This document shows, piece after piece, positions 55,901 to 64,000 of a stretch of DNA of 64,000 nucleotides (position 1 is the stretch's first letter; every line of letters begins with the position of its first letter). The stretch lies in the NCBI GenBank assembly GCA_963924565.1, contig OZ004612.1:14694001-14758000 (forward strand), in the 5' to 3' direction. This DNA comes from Ascidiella aspersa. Its lineage: Eukaryota. Below the pieces are notes generated by a model that was not told where the DNA came from, did no database searches, and was given only the letters and a program-made list of their open reading frames with translations. The position numbers and the translations under genes were made by a program.

Positions 55901-58900
55901 ATTTGTAACAGTATGTATAGTCCACGCTAGTTCAATGTTCTTACAAAAAGGTGTTGTTTAATATTCCCGAATACTTTTCTTTGATTAATTTATTTCATTT
56001 ATAATGTGACCATGCCTTATGGTTTACTCCTGTGAATAGCGGATTTCGGTTTATTCGCTTAGCATGATTGTTTTGCAATGTGACAGGTCGATGTCGCTGT
56101 TTATGAGCATCAAGACTATTGTTATGGACGGGTTGATTCTCTACAACGGTGGCCCTAGCGGCGATTTTATTGCCGTCGAACTTTCGGGAGGCCAAGTCTT
56201 TTACATCTACAACTTAGGGAACGGTCCTCAAGTAAGCAAAATATTTATACATATGCACATGTGACGTATCAGTCCCGCGGTCATTTTTAAAATAGATGTT
56301 TAGAAGACAAACTGAATAGTTCATACTGAACTTTGTTTGGTTTGCACGGTCTATCATTGTCATTTACCACTGTGCGTTTTACTGCTTGCACAGCCTCAAT
56401 TTTTGGTACATATTCGGCACATTACTGTCAATCTAACACAGTGATTTACAAACTTTTTCTTGTCGCGTCGACCTATTAGCTTTTTACAGTTGCTGAGCAC
56501 TGCTACTGTTTTTGTTCGGCTAAAGTTAAGTTCAGTTAATTCAATTTATTTGATCCATAAACTAGTGTGACGATCCGAACACTGCTCGTTTACCACCAGG
56601 AAAGCCCACATGTACCACTAGAGGTGCGTGAATCACAGCTTGAGAATCCTTGCTCTAACATAATAACAACGATTTTAAATCGTATACTATATACGGCAGC
56701 ACAACAAGCACAATTTTTTGGACAGCTTCGCTTATACCGGTGACACTTCGTTCAAAAAGCAAGCGCTGCCAAAATAAAGGCAATCATTTGTAGTTTTACT
56801 AAAAAACTTGCAATTAGGATGCTTCTTTTTACCACAAATGTGCATGTTAGGTTTTGACTGTGCCGGAGAGTGCTGCCGTGAACGACAACAAGTGGCACGA
56901 TATTCGCGTGACCAGATCGAGCCGGAACGTTCATACGCTTACTGTTGATGGAAAGGCGATCAAACAGACAGGACTCGAACAAAGAAGACACTTGGACCTA
57001 AATGGTAGCGTTTAATTGAAACGACGTGATGCCATCACAATTGCTAACAACCGCGTCATTTCGTCTGATTAGAGAATTATAAGTAGATTTAGCCCAAGAC
57101 TGACTTGGGCCAAGTAAAAACATTTACAGCCAAATACTACATGTCGATTCGTTTTGAATATGAATTTATAGTAAAACGCATATAAACTGTGAGCATTGCT
57201 ATTTAAAAATATAAATCATCAGCTGTCAATAAGTTGCGCTTCTGCCTAGTTTGACCAACTAAAAAACATTTTTGGACACATGTTGTTATGAATTAGTGTT
57301 AGGTAGTTTTGCTTATGTACTACTACTTTGTAGGTTACTTCTACGTTGGCGGTGTCAGTCAAATCATGTACTTAAACGACCTACCGGACATTGTTGCGTC
57401 ACGAACTGGATTCCAAGGTTGCCTGGGGTCACTGGAGGTCAATGGCAATCTGCAGGACTTGCGAAACCAGCAGGGAAAGATCACAATCGGAAAAGTGGCA
57501 GCCGGTTGCCTAGGTAAGAAAAAATAAATGCCGTTTAAGATAATTAATTTATTGTGTAAACGAAAAGCGTTAAATGCCGAAGAACGTACAGAGTATTATT
57601 GTATAAGTTTACGGGGTTTGGTGCATTTTGCATTATATTTGGTGTAACAATTTTTTAATGGCTTATTCCCTGTAGGCCTACCGATTGTTTTTTTTTAATT
57701 AAAAATGTCGAAGCTTCTTCTTTAAAATCAGTAAAAAAATTGTACAAGCATCAGAGACATAGTGGAGTTTGCTTCATGTCAGCTGTTTTTTTCTTGAGTA
57801 AAATACTTTTCGTTTAAGTTGTTTGCAATACCAATAGCAAAGTAGGTTATCAATCTAAAAGTTCAAATATTTTACAACGTAAAACCAATTCACCTTATAA
57901 ATATTTGCTTAGCCAATAATTTGGAAGAAACGGCTCACGTTTTAATATATTTTTAGTCTGCCTATAGCAAAAATTTACTTGGTCGGTGTTCCTTTCACAC
58001 CCTTCCATTATAGCCCATTATAGCAAAGTGTTTTTAATAAGCTTGTACAATCTTGCGGCCGCTTGATAGACAGAAAATGTTTTTTGGAACTATATCCCGC
58101 AGCATATTAGTTATATGTAAGTCTTTAACACTGGATCATGAATGCGGTAAAATATGTACAGATGTGTCCGCTTAACATTTATGGTTTTATGCCATTTCTA
58201 CGTTATATGCTTGAAAGCTAAAACAGTTTAGGTAGCAAGGAATCTCCCGCAGACAATAAAATGTAAAAGAAAGATTCTTGTTTTCGTATCAGATAATCTT
58301 AAACTGTTTATAAAAACAGATAAAACATAAAATCATTCCTTAAATTTTAACAGAAATATATATTTCGCCTATAAGGCATTATCAGTTTCTTAATTCGAAT
58401 TAATCTTCATTCGAATTGATTAATATGCTTGAATGCATTTTTTTTTCTTTTTGTTATAATTTTTAAACGTTACCCTTCACCAATAGCCCCTTCTCCACCT
58501 TGCACACCCACTACGTGCAGCAACGGCGGTGTGTGTCTGCAACAGTGGGACGGATTCAAGTGCGATTGCAGTCTCACCGCATACGTAGGAAAGCTCTGCC
58601 AACAACGTGAGTTTGGACACCGTTTAACTGACATGCAAATAATTAATTATTTGAATTGTCCGTGTTTGATTCCATTTTAACCGTATTGTGAGCTCGGATT
58701 AATGTTTGGAACTATATGGTTATAGGTAAAATATTATTCCTTTTCAGAAACTGATAATAATGTTAATCTGTTTAAAATGTAAAGAGGGTGCATTTTATTT
58801 ACCAAATCAACACCCTTGCTAATATTTCCAACAGTTTTTCTTGTCAACGTTTAAGCAATCGCCTATCACGGAAATCACAGCTGCTAAATTTGTAACTTGA

Positions 58901-61900
58901 AATCGATATTTAATTAAAACACCATTCAGATTGGTTGATGATAAATAAGTAACGCAAGTTTGTGTTAAATTTTTATTGATTTTGCTCATTAGACGAATAA
59001 TTTGGTGAAACGTGTGATGTACTCGATGTATGACTTTGCCATGACATACCATTATATAAATGTATGATGGTTTTTCAAAATACGAATGCGCATGAATTAT
59101 AATACGAAACCTTTATCAATATATTACTTTGATGTTTAATTTTTTTTTTATCTTAAAAAAATCTGCCTGCACGTTGTATTATATAAAAGGTGTACATCTC
59201 ATATTCTTTAAATTATAACGAGGTATTAGAGCAAGCCAATTTTAGACGTTAGTTCATCCAAGAACAAAACTCTCAGAAGGAAAATAACTTAAACGAATAA
59301 ATTATATTTTATTGTTTCTTTCCATTTAGACGTCAGTAAACTGCCCGGTAAGCAAGAGTGCTGTTTTGCTCCCAAAGTAACCATAATGTAGTTTCCAAGC
59401 TGAGTGCTGTGAGATACTGCTCTGAGCGCAGCGCTCGGACGACGGACTAAAAGCATGCAAAATTCACTACAACGTTAATTTTAAACAAGCATATTTTTAT
59501 ATATTATAGTTACATAAAGCCTTCTCGTTGACTTTCGCACAACTCGAGATGCGAAGCACGTAGTTTTATATATTTTGTGCTATGCACCGCGAATGTTTCA
59601 CCACGCTCGCAGTCTCTAACAAATGAAAAAGTTTTTTTTTTCGTTTAGCATTTGCTTTACAGCGAATGCGAAGTTATCCAAAAATTGTTTTCTGAACGTT
59701 AGTTTTATTCACTGCTTTCAATTCTTCCCAGGCAACATTGAATATATGTTGTTTGGCGTACTATTTTGATTTGCACAATGTGTACTGTAGTGTTTGTTTT
59801 ATTTCTGAAAGGTATTACTGAAAAAGGGATAAAATGTAGAGAAATGCAAAAAATGTTAATTGTATTACGATTGTATCATCAAAATTCCTCAGCCAAACCA
59901 CACAAACAGATGTTAACAAAACATTTTTTTTAATTAAAAAACAGGTTTACACCCTGTTGTTTTAGTGAGCTGCAAAAGTTTCTGTATAATACATTTATCG
60001 ATAGGTTTACGCAAACTGAATGCATGGTGTATTATGTCCGCATGATTTGCATGATGACCTATATGAGGATTTTACATTTTTTATTTTCAGAAATATTATT
60101 AAAAATCGTGTGTGGAAAATTTGGAAAACTAAATGGCCTAGCTAGTATGACTGTTCAATAAGCTATAACTTGCTGCCACTATCCAAACCACTGTTAACGC
60201 ATGCTACCATAGTTGTTTACTAAGTTTAAAATTGACTCCTTTTATCTTACTTAGATAACAAAAATAAAATTCTAGTGTTTTCATTCAAATGTAATTCGTG
60301 AGCCGAATGTTGACTACAATTTTGGTTCGGGTTGACAAGGCTGTAAAACCTTAGAAAAATCATTTAAAATATCCATCCTTATATGTCACCCACTGCACAC
60401 TAATGCCGTTCTGACCGAGTCCCTTACCACTGTTGAATTTACAGGAGGTAATAGCTACAAGTTTGGGCCTGGCGCCGGCCTTATGCTTTACAAATGGCCC
60501 AATACGTACCCGAGCACGCGCTCGGACCGCTTGGCCCTCGGCTTTTCGACGTCACTACGAGATTGCGTCATCCTGAAAGTGACCGGGTACACCGAGGCCC
60601 CCGCACAGGACTTTCTGCTCTTGGCCATCGTGAGTCCGCTTAAAAGTCAAGCGCGCGATTCATAGCTCTCAGCTGTTAGTAGGTTGACGTGAGCAAATAC
60701 CCTCACTTTACACACCGTGGTAACCATTCGAAACGAACTGCCCAGGCGTGCATTTCATGCGTTTTTAAAAACTGCTTCGAAATTTGAGCAGGCGTTTTTG
60801 TTCCGCCAACTAAACAGCATCCCCAGAACTACGAATCGCGCCCGACGAATTTCAACCTTTACTTACCACATCCTATTTATATTTTATTTTCATAATTTGC
60901 TCGCAAACCGCGGCCGCCAACCGTCAGAACTCTCCTCAAAGACTACCTACCGCTTCGACCGCGGAGTTATGGTGTTTCGATTTCCATCGCCGTTGCGCAG
61001 CGTTCGCTCAGACGTGCTGACTCTTGGTTTTGCCACCAGGGCTCGGAACTCTCTGCTGGTTGAGGTCGAGTCGGCTATGCGCCGGCCAAAGGACTTCCTT
61101 CGACTTGCCATAGTGAGAGGCGCGCCCTGGCGTGTTGGCTTGCTTCTGCTGCGGCGTGGCTGTGTGTGTTCTGGCTGTCGTCACCAGTTGTGCAAGCGTC
61201 ACAATGCCGAGTGCATGGGTTTTACTTCTCTAACTCGAACCGTTATGGATTACATCTTGTCGTTTCCCCCGTGTGTGTCGGTACTTGCCTATGGTTTTCA
61301 TTTTGAACGTGTTGCCTTAAAGTTCGACTGAAATGTTAACATCCTTCATTTGAATATCCATAACTCAAGCAAGTTTTTGTACATCTGGAGATAACCTCAG
61401 TTTGTGCCTGCATTTTTTCCTTTTGTTAACAAAAGAATGTCGATTGGTTTTTTGATGGCCATGTAAATCATTGTACGTTCGTTCAAACTAACATGACCAG
61501 CTCTTCTGGCAGTGTGGGATTTTCGACCTGTCTTTTTGTCGAAGCTTGATTGTTGAAAGAGTTTTGTTTTTCGGTCCCTAATCGTTTTAAAACGTTCTAC
61601 GGCGGCCTCGGTTTGCGATTATATCGTAAAATCATTGTAATGCCTAAGCATTGAATATTTATCATAGTTTTTTTACAATATTTTACTTTAATTTTAATAT
61701 CATGTAAAACATGCTTAGAATTCGGAGATATTTTCTAAAATGTCTGCAAAATATAATAAAACCCATTTTTGAGGCCTTTTTCGCGTCAAGTTTTTAACAT
61801 ATTGTTATAAGTTGCTTGAAACCGATAAAAATAAGCGGATGCATAAAACAGTTTTATTTTTAACACTCGATTGATTAGTTGGATTCGTAGAAACACTGCA

Positions 61901-63318
61901 GCAACTGACGTGAGACAATTGGCCTTTCACTTGCTAATGGGTTTTAATGGCTTCGGGATGTTAGTGGAATCGCTTTGTCTTAAACGTTTGGCAGAAACCC
62001 GAAGTCAATATGCTCCCTTCTACTAGCTGTGAACCTTGTTGCACTGACAAACCTTTTTTTGTTCCTTTCACAAGGAAAACGGCAAGCTCATTCTTCGTTT
62101 TAACGTTGGTGGAGCGAGCGACGTGGTGCTGAGAGAAGGAATGTCCGTTTCGGACGGAAGCTACCACACTGTGCAGGTGCGCCGCCAGTGGCTGAACGCC
62201 ACCATGCGTGTCGACAATTGGCCGGTCAGAAGCGTCGCCCCGCCCGGTAAGTTGGTCACGTGATGTTGATGATACAAATAGTTACGTTTGTGTAACGTCG
62301 AGTATTTAAATAAACAGAAAAAGTAAAATCGACGGTTTGATTTTTTTGAAGATTTGAAATATACGTGTTTTTCTATTGTTGTAAAACTAATTTACTAGAA
62401 AACAAATGGTTGTTGACGATTTTTAAAATCCAAGTTTTTGGAAATATTATAATTAACAACGTTAGTGTGCTACAATTTGGTAAAAAGTTATTATTGGTTT
62501 CTATTTTCACCTTTGATTATACTGCCTAAAAAGAATATGAATAAAAACCTTGCATTCTGACCGATAGTTGTACAATTTGCATGTGCATTTTACTTAACGT
62601 TCATCGTTTTCAATAGCAGCAGTAACATAACCATCATTTTAGCTGTTTATCCCGTTAACCTTAACCAACAACCATCACCGCTCTGTAAAACGATGTGTGG
62701 CCTGTTTCTCTCGATGCACGTGAATACTAACGATTTCATCCTAACCGAATGGCATAGCAGGAACGCAGTAACATAAACGTCGTAACAACCGGTCTTGGTG
62801 TGCTGGCGGGAAGGTGGCCAAAATAATTCCACAATAGAAAAGACTCACCGGACAAATTTGGTTAAATTGTTTACCGTTTAAAACACGAAATGTAGAGCGG
62901 CACATGATCATTTTTTTTAATCATATCATGATCCTACGTTTGCAATACAAAAGCCCCGCCAATTATGTTAACGCTTTATTAACAACTTAAAACACCCGAA
63001 ATCCATTGTCAACCACAAGTCTCAGGTCCCCTGATAAACGCGAACAGTCATTAATAATGTTAAGTCTAATTAGTGAACAATTATATTTTCCAAATTAAAA
63101 AAATGACTCAGACGACATAAACTCTTGTGTAAATTCAATTTCATCTTGCTCCTATGGAGCTTGTCTCCAAAACCCAATAACAAATTTGCTCTCCCCACGG
63201 TTCCTTCTTTTATATACGTTTCTTGTTGTAGGGGATGCACGTTCCCGCTTTGCTCGCGTGATACCCTCGATAGCTTCCCCTGCCCGTCCCACCATTGATA
63301 AGTGGTTGCAACGCAAAG
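22133..63318 (+). CDS. NRXN: alpha-Neurexin, 5' part (signal peptide, LNS1-EGF1-LNS2-LNS3-EGF2-LNS4-LNS5-EGF3-LNS6 partial); continues beyond the window
   Basis: 20 phase-consistent backbone exons (3739 nt to 62246, using LNS6 exon A) with neurexin-specific motifs [89 protein letters not shown]. Confidence 0.96.
23025..23122 (+). CDS. NRXN: Neurexin EGF1 exon
   Basis: [32 protein letters not shown]; donor gtgagt. Confidence 0.95.
23789..23827 (+). CDS. NRXN: Neurexin SS1-like 39-nt cassette exon (predicted)
   Basis: cgcgttag|...|gtgaga, phase 1-1, no stop, [13 protein letters not shown]; resembles vertebrate SS1 GLAHLMMGDQ. Confidence 0.65.
27480..27620 (+). CDS. NRXN: Neurexin LNS2 exon a
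   Basis: [46 protein letters not shown]. Confidence 0.95.
30735..30837 (+). pseudogene. Degenerate partial duplicate of LNS2 exon a with its upstream intron flank (pseudo-exon or poison exon; exon part 30765-30837)
   Basis: 51/67 nt identical to 27480-27546 without indels; acceptor tgacag retained; GGA changed to in-frame TGA at 30794-30796. Confidence 0.85.
31145..31308 (+). CDS. NRXN: Neurexin LNS2 exon b
   Basis: [55 protein letters not shown]. Confidence 0.96.
32674..32700 (+). CDS. NRXN: Neurexin SS2 27-nt microexon (possible longer form to 32754)
   Basis: Phase 0-0 TRDDPTPAM|gtaaag at the SS2 position; UGC-rich upstream intron; second in-frame GT at 32755. Confidence 0.75.
32869..32960. 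repeat. ~45-bp tandem duplication downstream of the SS2 microexon
   Basis: ATGTCTTT(G)TTTCTTAATGTAATGTGCCCTGGTACRCAAATAACCC present twice. Confidence 0.9.
35243..35410 (+). CDS. NRXN: Neurexin LNS2 exon c
   Basis: [56 protein letters not shown]. Confidence 0.96.
36316..36537 (+). CDS. NRXN: Neurexin LNS2/LNS3 junction exon
   Basis: [18 protein letters not shown]...VQFACAK...PVSFITPES...[11 protein letters not shown]. Confidence 0.95.
36972..37079 (+). CDS. NRXN: Neurexin LNS3 exon
   Basis: [36 protein letters not shown]. Confidence 0.94.
37761..37883 (+). CDS. NRXN: Neurexin LNS3 exon
   Basis: [41 protein letters not shown]. Confidence 0.93.
38143..38307 (+). CDS. NRXN: Neurexin LNS3 exon
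   Basis: [55 protein letters not shown]. Confidence 0.94.
44979..45294 (+). CDS. NRXN: Neurexin EGF2 and start of LNS4
   Basis: [33 protein letters not shown]...SFDGTQHM...EDISLRFRT. Confidence 0.96.
45870..45962 (+). CDS. NRXN: Neurexin LNS4 exon preceding SS3
   Basis: [31 protein letters not shown]. Confidence 0.94.
46226..46255 (+). CDS. NRXN: Neurexin SS3 30-nt microexon
   Basis: tacag|...|gtaagt, phase 1-1, [10 protein letters not shown] versus vertebrate SS3 DCIRINCNSS. Confidence 0.9.
48033..48152 (+). CDS. NRXN: Neurexin LNS4 exon following SS3
   Basis: [39 protein letters not shown]. Confidence 0.95.
50538..52013. mobile_element. Non-autonomous hAT element (~1.48 kb) with a second hAT-like left end nested at 50862
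   Basis: TIRs CAGTGGTTCCCAACC / GCTTGGGAACTACTG; perfect 8-bp TSD CACTAGAT at 50530-50537 and 52014-52021; GGACCCC subterminal repeats; no transposase ORF. Confidence 0.9.
53223..53272. repeat. 24-bp tandem duplication
   Basis: TCGTAATATTAGCTTTTACTTAAG present twice. Confidence 0.85.
54876..55032 (+). CDS. NRXN: Neurexin LNS4 exon
   Basis: [52 protein letters not shown]; phase 1-2. Confidence 0.92.
55655..55780 (+). CDS. NRXN: Neurexin LNS4/LNS5 junction exon
   Basis: [41 protein letters not shown]; phase 2-2. Confidence 0.92.
56087..56231 (+). CDS. NRXN: Neurexin LNS5 exon
   Basis: [48 protein letters not shown]. Confidence 0.95.
56439..56652. mobile_element. Degenerate hAT MITE in a neurexin intron
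   Basis: CAGTGATTTACAAACT ... GCTTGAGAATCCTTG; TSD ATCTAACA/CTCTAACA (7/8). Confidence 0.65.
56851..57004 (+). CDS. NRXN: Neurexin LNS5 exon
   Basis: [51 protein letters not shown]. Confidence 0.95.
57334..57513 (+). CDS. NRXN: Neurexin LNS5 exon
   Basis: [42 protein letters not shown]...VAAGCL. Confidence 0.95.
58487..58606 (+). CDS. NRXN: Neurexin EGF3 exon
   Basis: [39 protein letters not shown]. Confidence 0.96.
59330..59347 (+). CDS. NRXN: Predicted 18-nt microexon between EGF3 and LNS6
   Basis: attgtttctttccatttag|ACGTCAGTAAACTGCCCG|gtaagc; phase 1-1; encodes HVSKLP. Confidence 0.65.
60445..60629 (+). CDS. NRXN: Neurexin LNS6 first exon, variant A (canonical-like; mutually exclusive with B)
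   Basis: 185 nt, phase 1-0; [35 protein letters not shown]...QDFLLLAI|gtgagt. Confidence 0.95.
60646..60866 (+). promoter_or_regulatory. Predicted intronic pre-mRNA stem with adjacent putative branch point between LNS6 exons A and B
   Basis: 60653-60669 pairs with 60825-60841 (15/17 Watson-Crick); 60672-60680 pairs with 60809-60818; TACTTAC at 60860-60866. Confidence 0.65.
60928..61112 (+). CDS. NRXN: Neurexin LNS6 first exon, variant B (divergent tandem duplicate; mutually exclusive with A)
   Basis: 185 nt, phase 1-0, open frame; [36 protein letters not shown]...KDFLRLAI|gtgaga. Confidence 0.88.
62075..62246 (+). CDS. NRXN: Neurexin LNS6 second exon (precedes SS4)
   Basis: [57 protein letters not shown]. 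Confidence 0.96.
63232..63318 (+). CDS. NRXN: Neurexin SS4 cassette exon (87 nt)
   Basis: Long pyrimidine tract then tag|; phase 1-1; [29 protein letters not shown](G) versus vertebrate SS4 ...RVVDEWLLDKG. Confidence 0.88.
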
Positions 63319-64000
63319 GTACTAACAAAACTCGGTGTCGTGTACATTCTTAATATGCTTCCTAACATGTTAAACACTATACTTTGTATATACGGTCGTG
63401 CTGTCTGTCTATGTTTCTGTATTTAAATGCTACTAACCCTGTTTATTTACATTAACGTATTACGCTTTGTGCATGAACCCTAGTTTTTGTTTGGTCAAGA
63501 CAACAATTGCTGCTTTGTACAGCGAATATTTCCTCCGTAAACCATCTGAATTGCGTGATTACACACGTCTGTGTTCGAAAGCAGCTCGTTTTCAACCTTG
63601 CCAAAACTACATTGCCTTTCTGAAAAAATAAACAAACATATCGTATTGTTAAGTACTGCAAAATTACGATTGAACCCATGCTTGATAATCCTAATATTCA
63701 AGTAAAATCCTGTGTATGATTAACCTAATCCATAAATTGTTGTAAATTCTCTAAAACAGTAAAACCAAGTCGGATTAAAGCTTTCATAACTCTTCACTAA
63801 AATTAATAAAAATCGGTGTGGACGTATTTTATGTACGATTTTCACAAGTTTATAAAGATTTATGAAAAGTATGATTTACCGATCACCTGAGTGCTTTTTC
63901 TGCAGTCTACTGATACAGTTAGAGAAACCCTGAATTAAACCGCTGTCGATTTAACAGTATTCGAACGTTGCGCACCGCCAAGAGACTAACTTATTCTTTG

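Follow-up and report, generated by a model that had tools for sequence, protein, structure and literature searches.

A tandem pair of homologous first LNS6 exons in the neurexin gene of a sea squirt, predicted to be spliced as alternatives

Postsynaptic partners of neurexin dock mainly on its LNS6 domain. In the window analyzed here, a stretch of 64,000 nucleotides of Ascidiella aspersa DNA, two neighboring exons, A and B, each appear to encode the start of this domain, and the locus raises the question of whether a single gene uses them to produce two versions of the LNS6 binding face. The features of the region are collected in Table 1. The acceptor of exon A reads tttacag/GAGG and its end CATC/GTGAGT, the corresponding borders of exon B are cgtcag/AACT and CATA/GTGAGA, and each exon consists of two leading bases followed by 61 open codons. 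The phase of the flanking exons matches A and B on both sides (the EGF3 exon and the rest of LNS6), and the junction codon shared with the EGF3 exon is completed as c/ga (Arg) for A and as c/aa (Gln) for B. If A and B are joined, the frame meets a TGA inside B; if both are skipped, it meets a TAA ten codons into the downstream constitutive exon. Because each exon is 3n+2 nucleotides long, so that inclusion of both or of neither leads to early stops, we infer that the choice between A and B is exclusive. The original prediction had given the coordinates, the 185-nt lengths, the GTGAG donors and the open frames, all of which were confirmed in the sequence, and the two stops bear out its further claim that including both exons or neither shifts the frame.

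Table 1. Positions of the exon pair and of neighboring features in the window
Feature	Position	Strand	Remarks
Upstream constitutive exon, end of EGF3	58487-58606	+	Ends in phase 1 (one base of split codon)
Two TGCATG motifs (Rbfox-type)	60021-60053	+	424 and 397 nt upstream of A
Exon A, canonical version of first LNS6 exon	60445-60629	+	185 nt; phase 1 to 0; donor GTGAGT
A-B intron	60630-60927	+	298 nt; 185-437 nt in other species; without (U)GCAUG
Exon B, diverged, more basic version of first LNS6 exon	60928-61112	+	185 nt; phase 1 to 0; donor GTGAGA
TGCATG motif	61212-61217	+	100 nt downstream of B donor, in G/U-rich stretch
Downstream constitutive LNS6 exon	62075-62246	+	Common to A and B forms; X3 RNA contig matches exact span
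SS4-like exon	63195-63326		Homologue of SS4 exon, 2 kb downstream of pair; skipped in X3 contig

The GC content of exon B (56%) is like that of proven exons, the long flanking introns having 33-39% and the A-B intron 46%. The frame of exon B is open from 60693 to 61331 on the plus strand, a run of 212 codons that begins ~78 codons ahead of the exon and ends ~73 codons beyond it. The peptide flanking B is not LNS-like, and the read-through frames are not conserved in the other species described below. Past the B donor, positions 61113-61230 are rich in G and U and contain runs of UGUGUGUGU and UGCUGC, and the long open frame around B is probably an effect of composition together with splicing-factor sites.

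The peptides encoded by A and B are clearly related to each other. Their local BLOSUM62 alignment scores 97, ~19 standard deviations above 5000 shuffles (mean 21, S.D. 4, maximum 45). Identity is 41-42% over 56-58 residues in a search of the species' own genome and 38% in a 12-sequence alignment, close to the ~37% previously estimated by hand, the computed value of 38-42% depending on the alignment used. The alignment takes three small gaps, and the equal length of the two exons is therefore not due to a history free of insertions and deletions. Among proteins of known structure in the PDB, A matches only the start of neurexin LNS6 (E=1.6e-11, 47 bits) and so does B (E=7e-4, 23 bits), the top 19 matches of B all being neurexins. 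These matches and the shuffle test agree with the tandem duplication of homologous exons that had been proposed. A and B are the sole matches to either peptide in the 308.6-Mb assembly and match each other reciprocally. Long contigs from two DNA runs cross the A-B region, showing that the pair is not an assembly duplication. Pfam gave no score for A- and B-type peptides of 61-65 residues, and word-indexed protein searches with A, B and a profile of B, whose length limits exclude full-length neurexins, returned only three short frames that were already known. A look-up in the ESM Atlas returned merely "laminin-G fragment, chordate." Elsewhere in the same assembly, a stretch the size of an exon (G000:C5:19613851-19614090) matches glycoside hydrolase family 6 with 28.1 bits, above the Pfam cut-off, and we take it to fit the tunicate cellulose synthase.

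The same arrangement is found in five other species. A phmmer search of 1.84 billion cluster-representative proteins with the B peptide as the sole query gave six matches, of which one (P0001) is a repetitive bacterial protein and was rejected as false. The five true matches are short frames of 83-192 residues on genomic contigs; they are 44-56% identical to B, end with the B-type motif and then continue beyond the GT. The contigs of the five species are L005, L006, L007, L008/L009 and L010-L013, the members of the last group being 99.7% alike and hence assigned to one species. As these loci came via a protein library, the search could reach only species whose B frame is open. In all five, as far as the contigs reach, the EGF3 exon is followed by an A-type exon, and this by an intron of 185-437 nt, a B-type exon and the next LNS6 exon, designated ENGKL; each B-type exon has an A-type exon upstream and the ENGKL exon downstream, and the orthologous EGF3 exon lies upstream of the pair in L005, L007 and L010. 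Every A-type exon has A as its best match and every B-type exon has B. An AG acceptor and a GT donor are present in 12 of 12 exons, whose lengths (176, 185, 191 or 197 nt) are all 3n+2. The donors are GTGAGT or GTAAGT for A and GTGAGA or GTGAGC for B in each of the six species, the B donors having a slightly weaker match to U1 than the A donors. No third copy of the exon was found at the locus of any of the six. In a maximum-likelihood tree the A-types and B-types form separate clades (support 95/91), with L008 as the outlying species of each, indicating that the duplication is older than the six species. At the level of sequence these comparisons show A and B to be the products of one old duplication of the first LNS6 exon in a single alpha-neurexin gene.

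Amino-acid identity ranges from 39 to 54% among the B-types, from 38 to 59% among the A-types and from 25 to 42% between types. Identities at the first, second and third codon positions are 0.55, 0.65 and 0.34 for B and 0.60, 0.67 and 0.32 for A; pN is 0.39 for B versus 0.36 for A, and the pS values of 0.79-0.85 come from synonymous sites that are saturated. When the DNA of the window is aligned with the other loci, the exons align and the introns do not, B aligning in three loci. Judged by these values, B evolves about as slowly as A at the protein level. The intact frame and the protein-level constraint, in a region where introns do not align, argue that B is a selected coding exon and not a relic. 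Selection on B had been part of the original prediction, with a check of the exon in relatives: in the five species found via their open frames it is neither frameshifted nor neutral, and it retains the frame, the AG and GT borders, the 3n+2 length and a protein constraint like that of A. As a separate observation within the species, zero single nucleotide polymorphisms are listed from three runs over 60315-61713, a block of 1.4 kb that takes in both exons, the intron between them and 600 nt downstream of B, and the introns flanking this block have about one difference per 100-200 nt. The block could reflect constraint or a shared haplotype block and, with few individuals, is only suggestive.

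The part of the domain that differs between A and B includes much of the rim contacted by neuroligin. Residues of neurexin-1 beta that are buried by neuroligin, together with the calcium ligands, are listed in PMC2570956. When the N of the P-P-N-D sequence is numbered 103, the vertebrate sequence in the alignments with A and B fits this list exactly (P106, S107, T108, R109, S132, L135, and D137). With N103, the exon thus has eight neuroligin-contact residues, carried on a loop from N103 to R109 and a loop from S132 to D137; V154 falls in the downstream exon common to both forms. The D-F-L motif that closes the exon supplies D137, which is aligned with the D of G-D-Y-L-E and is not the Asp of R-S-D. 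This numbering and the alignments fit the earlier assignment of much of the contact rim, with the calcium Asp D137, to this exon, and alignments to vertebrate LNS6 show the Asp in both variants, as had been expected. Among the contact residues, A retains the N, P-S-T-R and the D; B retains S107, R109 and D137 and is altered at N103, P106, T108, S132 and L135. Across species, the positions of R109 and D137 are invariant in all six B-types, and D137 is D or N in the A-types. B has a conserved S-x-M and a basic run ahead of the Asp. In the Y-x-W segment Trp is fixed in the A-types and Phe in the B-types, and in L-G-F the Gly is fixed in the A-types and free in the B-types. Net charge is +3 to +7 in the B-types and -1 to +5 in the A-types, B being the more basic member in 6 of 6 species; the count of 12 Lys and Arg residues in B versus 7 in A, given before, is correct when the junction codon is included. 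From the alignment with the vertebrate contacts, the rim in B would be rebuilt and more basic on the same LNS core and calcium site, and B probably shifts partner preference. The candidate partners are neuroligins and other LNS6 ligands. The original prediction also named LRRTMs, which is overstated, since tunicate and lancelet genomes yielded no lrrtm gene (PMC3933685).

The RNA that covers the locus is sparse. Run X4, one raw-read RNA run, contributes 14 reads, all in an orientation that fits a plus-strand gene and none with a junction. Run X3, from the same study as the genome runs, contains spliced RNA. One of its contigs corresponds to 60336-60630 plus three further letters; it covers A and stops at the A donor, and the additional g that matches agrees with the base at which the downstream constitutive exon begins and not with the initial a of B. 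The preferred reading of this contig is a direct junction from A to the downstream exon that skips B. Another X3 contig spans the downstream exon and continues for 23 letters at position 64011, which lies past the window end and behind an AG (G000:C6:14758011). Because position 62246 is thereby joined to 64011, at least the form lacking the SS4-like exon is expressed. Depth in X3 is zero over 60644-61017, which includes the first half of B, and is 2-4 on proven exons, no higher than on introns, so that a minority isoform could not have shown up. Junctions of B are found neither among the 14 X4 reads nor in the X3 contigs, at a depth far too low to decide on its use.

The distribution of Rbfox-type motifs around the pair is conserved in position. 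A TGCATG cluster lies upstream of A in all five species with enough flank; 11 TGCATG occur in 3445 nt upstream of A-type exons versus 1.4 in simulations, and none is on the opposite strand. A GCATG lies within 300 nt past B in 6 of 6 species (P ~0.001 by simulation, the motif windows having been picked after looking at the data), and the A-B introns of the six species together contain no TGCATG and one GCATG. Rbfox proteins follow a position rule in which an upstream site represses and a downstream site activates an exon. The layout of (U)GCAUG therefore suggests Rbfox control, with a change from A to B where Rbfox is active. The upstream cluster may instead act on an 18-nt microexon, because it also lies downstream of this conserved element. 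The candidate microexon, at 59330-59347 on the plus strand between EGF3 and exon A, reads ttag/ACGTCAGTAAACTGCCCG/gtaagc and runs from phase 1 to phase 1; an almost identical element, bordered by AG and GTAAG, is present in L010 (8663-8680), and the microexon is one of only three weak intronic DNA matches of the window to any other locus (E=0.005). With the microexon included, the junction codon becomes Gly before A and Glu before B.

Steric exclusion of the two exons would require a shorter A-B intron than the one present, and the introns are both of the GT-AG type. The simplest guarantee of exclusivity is therefore the frame rule together with decay of off-frame mRNA. Pairing of the kind known from Dscam was sought between the last 100 nt in front of B and the intron that follows it; in the six species the best duplexes gave z values of -0.6 to +1.0, in a crude test that leaves weak pairing possible. 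The fold of the A-B intron (z = -1.6) is not beyond that of shuffles, and a stem in this intron (60653-60669 with 60825-60841) was for this reason discarded as a means of control by structure. An inverted repeat, 60888-60918 with 61601-61631, brackets exon B; its arms of 31 nt are 77% complementary with a GC-rich core of 15/16. Looping-out of B by this repeat was likewise rejected, because the duplex energies are like chance and no clear counterpart was found in the other species.

Other readings of exon B were weighed against that of an alternative coding exon. A decaying relic, that is a pseudo-exon, or an artefact of the assembly would agree with the fact that no B transcript was seen in the low-depth RNA of X3 and X4 and with the greater distance of B than of A from vertebrate LNS6 (23 versus 47 bits), but six deeply diverged species have kept the B frame, its splice sites, the 3n+2 length and 39-54% of the amino acids while synonymous sites became saturated and introns unalignable, and both exons are spanned by the long contigs of two DNA runs; we regard this reading as extremely improbable. 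It is also very improbable that B is a poison exon, added after A to shift the frame and cut neurexin output via nonsense-mediated decay. The stop that A+B creates inside B and the conserved splicing motifs near B are what such an exon would have. However, a poison exon requires neither an open frame nor homology to A, and the conservation of B is in the LNS6 frame: its third codon positions are near random (0.34) with the first and second kept (0.55 and 0.65), and, at a low DNA identity, the B-types do not vary in the LNS core residues or the calcium Asp.

A further possibility is that B is a conserved coding exon that takes no part in a simple choice between A and B in the full-length mRNA, belonging for example to a truncated isoform or to transcripts started at an internal, beta-like promoter. 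The RNA runs, with 14 reads in X4 and the low depth of X3, show no B junctions, as this would predict, and the open frame extends ~73 codons beyond the B donor in the window, compared with 28-63 codons in the five other species. Yet the read-through past B is neither conserved nor LNS-like, long frames were favored by the search route, and a GTGAG donor directly follows the last conserved codon in 6 of 6 species, with the phase of B fitting the flanking exons. The open frame of B has no in-frame ATG upstream of the exon, the A-B intron is without a usable start exon, and a start exon of the beta-neurexin type reading into A or B was rejected for want of an in-frame ATG. Use of B outside an A/B choice is thus unlikely. 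We consider it likely that the tandem exons are a conserved alternative coding pair and that either A or B is present in an mRNA whose frame is intact. On the genomic sequence of the pair, a single gene probably yields two forms of the LNS6 binding face. From the same material we infer the use of B in mRNA, exclusivity in vivo, control by Rbfox and altered binding.

The mechanism proposed for this alternative pair is as follows. The first LNS6 exon was duplicated in tandem long ago, and the single alpha-neurexin gene would have kept the copies as a choice between two exons. An mRNA with an intact frame would carry A or B, never both or neither, and double inclusion or double skipping would give early stops and lead to nonsense-mediated decay. 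The product of A would have the canonical LNS6, and that of B an LNS6 in which the core and calcium site are retained and the rim, in two neuroligin-contact loops, is rebuilt and more basic. B, which has the weaker donor (GTGAGA/GTGAGC versus GTRAGT), would probably be a regulated minority choice, and an Rbfox-type factor would switch it on through the GCAUG that follows B and the UGCAUG that precedes A.

Tandem-duplicated exclusive exon pairs are well known, FGFR IIIb/IIIc being the closest to this one; such a pair on the neurexin LNS6 rim would be new. In FGFR1-3, mutually exclusive exons IIIb and IIIc encode the second half of Ig domain III and change ligand choice, and tissue-specific factors make the choice through intronic motifs that include UGCAUG. 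The neurexin pair is similar in that adjacent homologous exons encode part of a ligand-binding domain and have non-3n lengths that break the frame. It differs in fold, the first third of an LNS/laminin-G domain being swapped in place of part of an Ig domain, and use of the second exon and a ligand switch are here predicted from genome sequence. Vertebrate neurexins reshape the LNS rim around the calcium site by splicing at SS4 in LNS6 and at SS2 and SS3 in LNS2 and LNS4, which sets their partners; SS4, however, is a cassette insert in one loop, whereas A and B represent substitution of a whole exon and affect two other rim loops. The exon 4, 6 and 9 clusters of insect Dscam1 also consist of tandem-duplicated exclusive exons for the binding domain of a neuronal adhesion protein. 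The pair had been called Dscam-like in the original prediction, which is an overstatement: there are exactly two variants in each of six species, no docking or selector pairing was found beyond shuffles, and the frame rule can suffice. According to PMC12772994, exons 5a and 5b of SCN alpha-subunits are an ancient duplicated pair with unannotated distant copies and conserved intronic elements; they resemble A and B in having been kept over long evolutionary spans and differ in belonging to another gene, the intronic conservation here being one of motif position only and not of alignable sequence. In the literature on exclusive exons and exon duplication in neurexins and on ascidians and Ciona, judged mostly by titles, abstracts and term counts, no such pair is described. 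A study of honeybee neurexin concerns other splice sites and does not contain the words "mutually exclusive."

Vertebrates adjust LNS6 specificity with the SS4 insert and through their three neurexin paralogues. The swap of a whole exon, with two rim loops rebuilt and the calcium site kept, would constitute a third, undescribed way of tuning LNS6, in the closest invertebrate relatives of vertebrates. For annotation, gene models with A alone, or with both exons, would be wrong. With A and B, binding and structural studies have two naturally occurring LNS6 variants to compare. Larvae of the Ciona type have few neurons, and they would be a tractable system for asking whether the choice of neurexin isoform specifies synaptic partners. 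It is possible, as a tentative and somewhat less than even proposition, that sea squirts, with one neurexin gene, use an ancient Rbfox-switched pair to place two LNS6 specificities in different neurons, and that this may be the state of the chordate ancestor. If true, the pair would represent a splicing route to the diversity that vertebrates get from three paralogues plus SS4.
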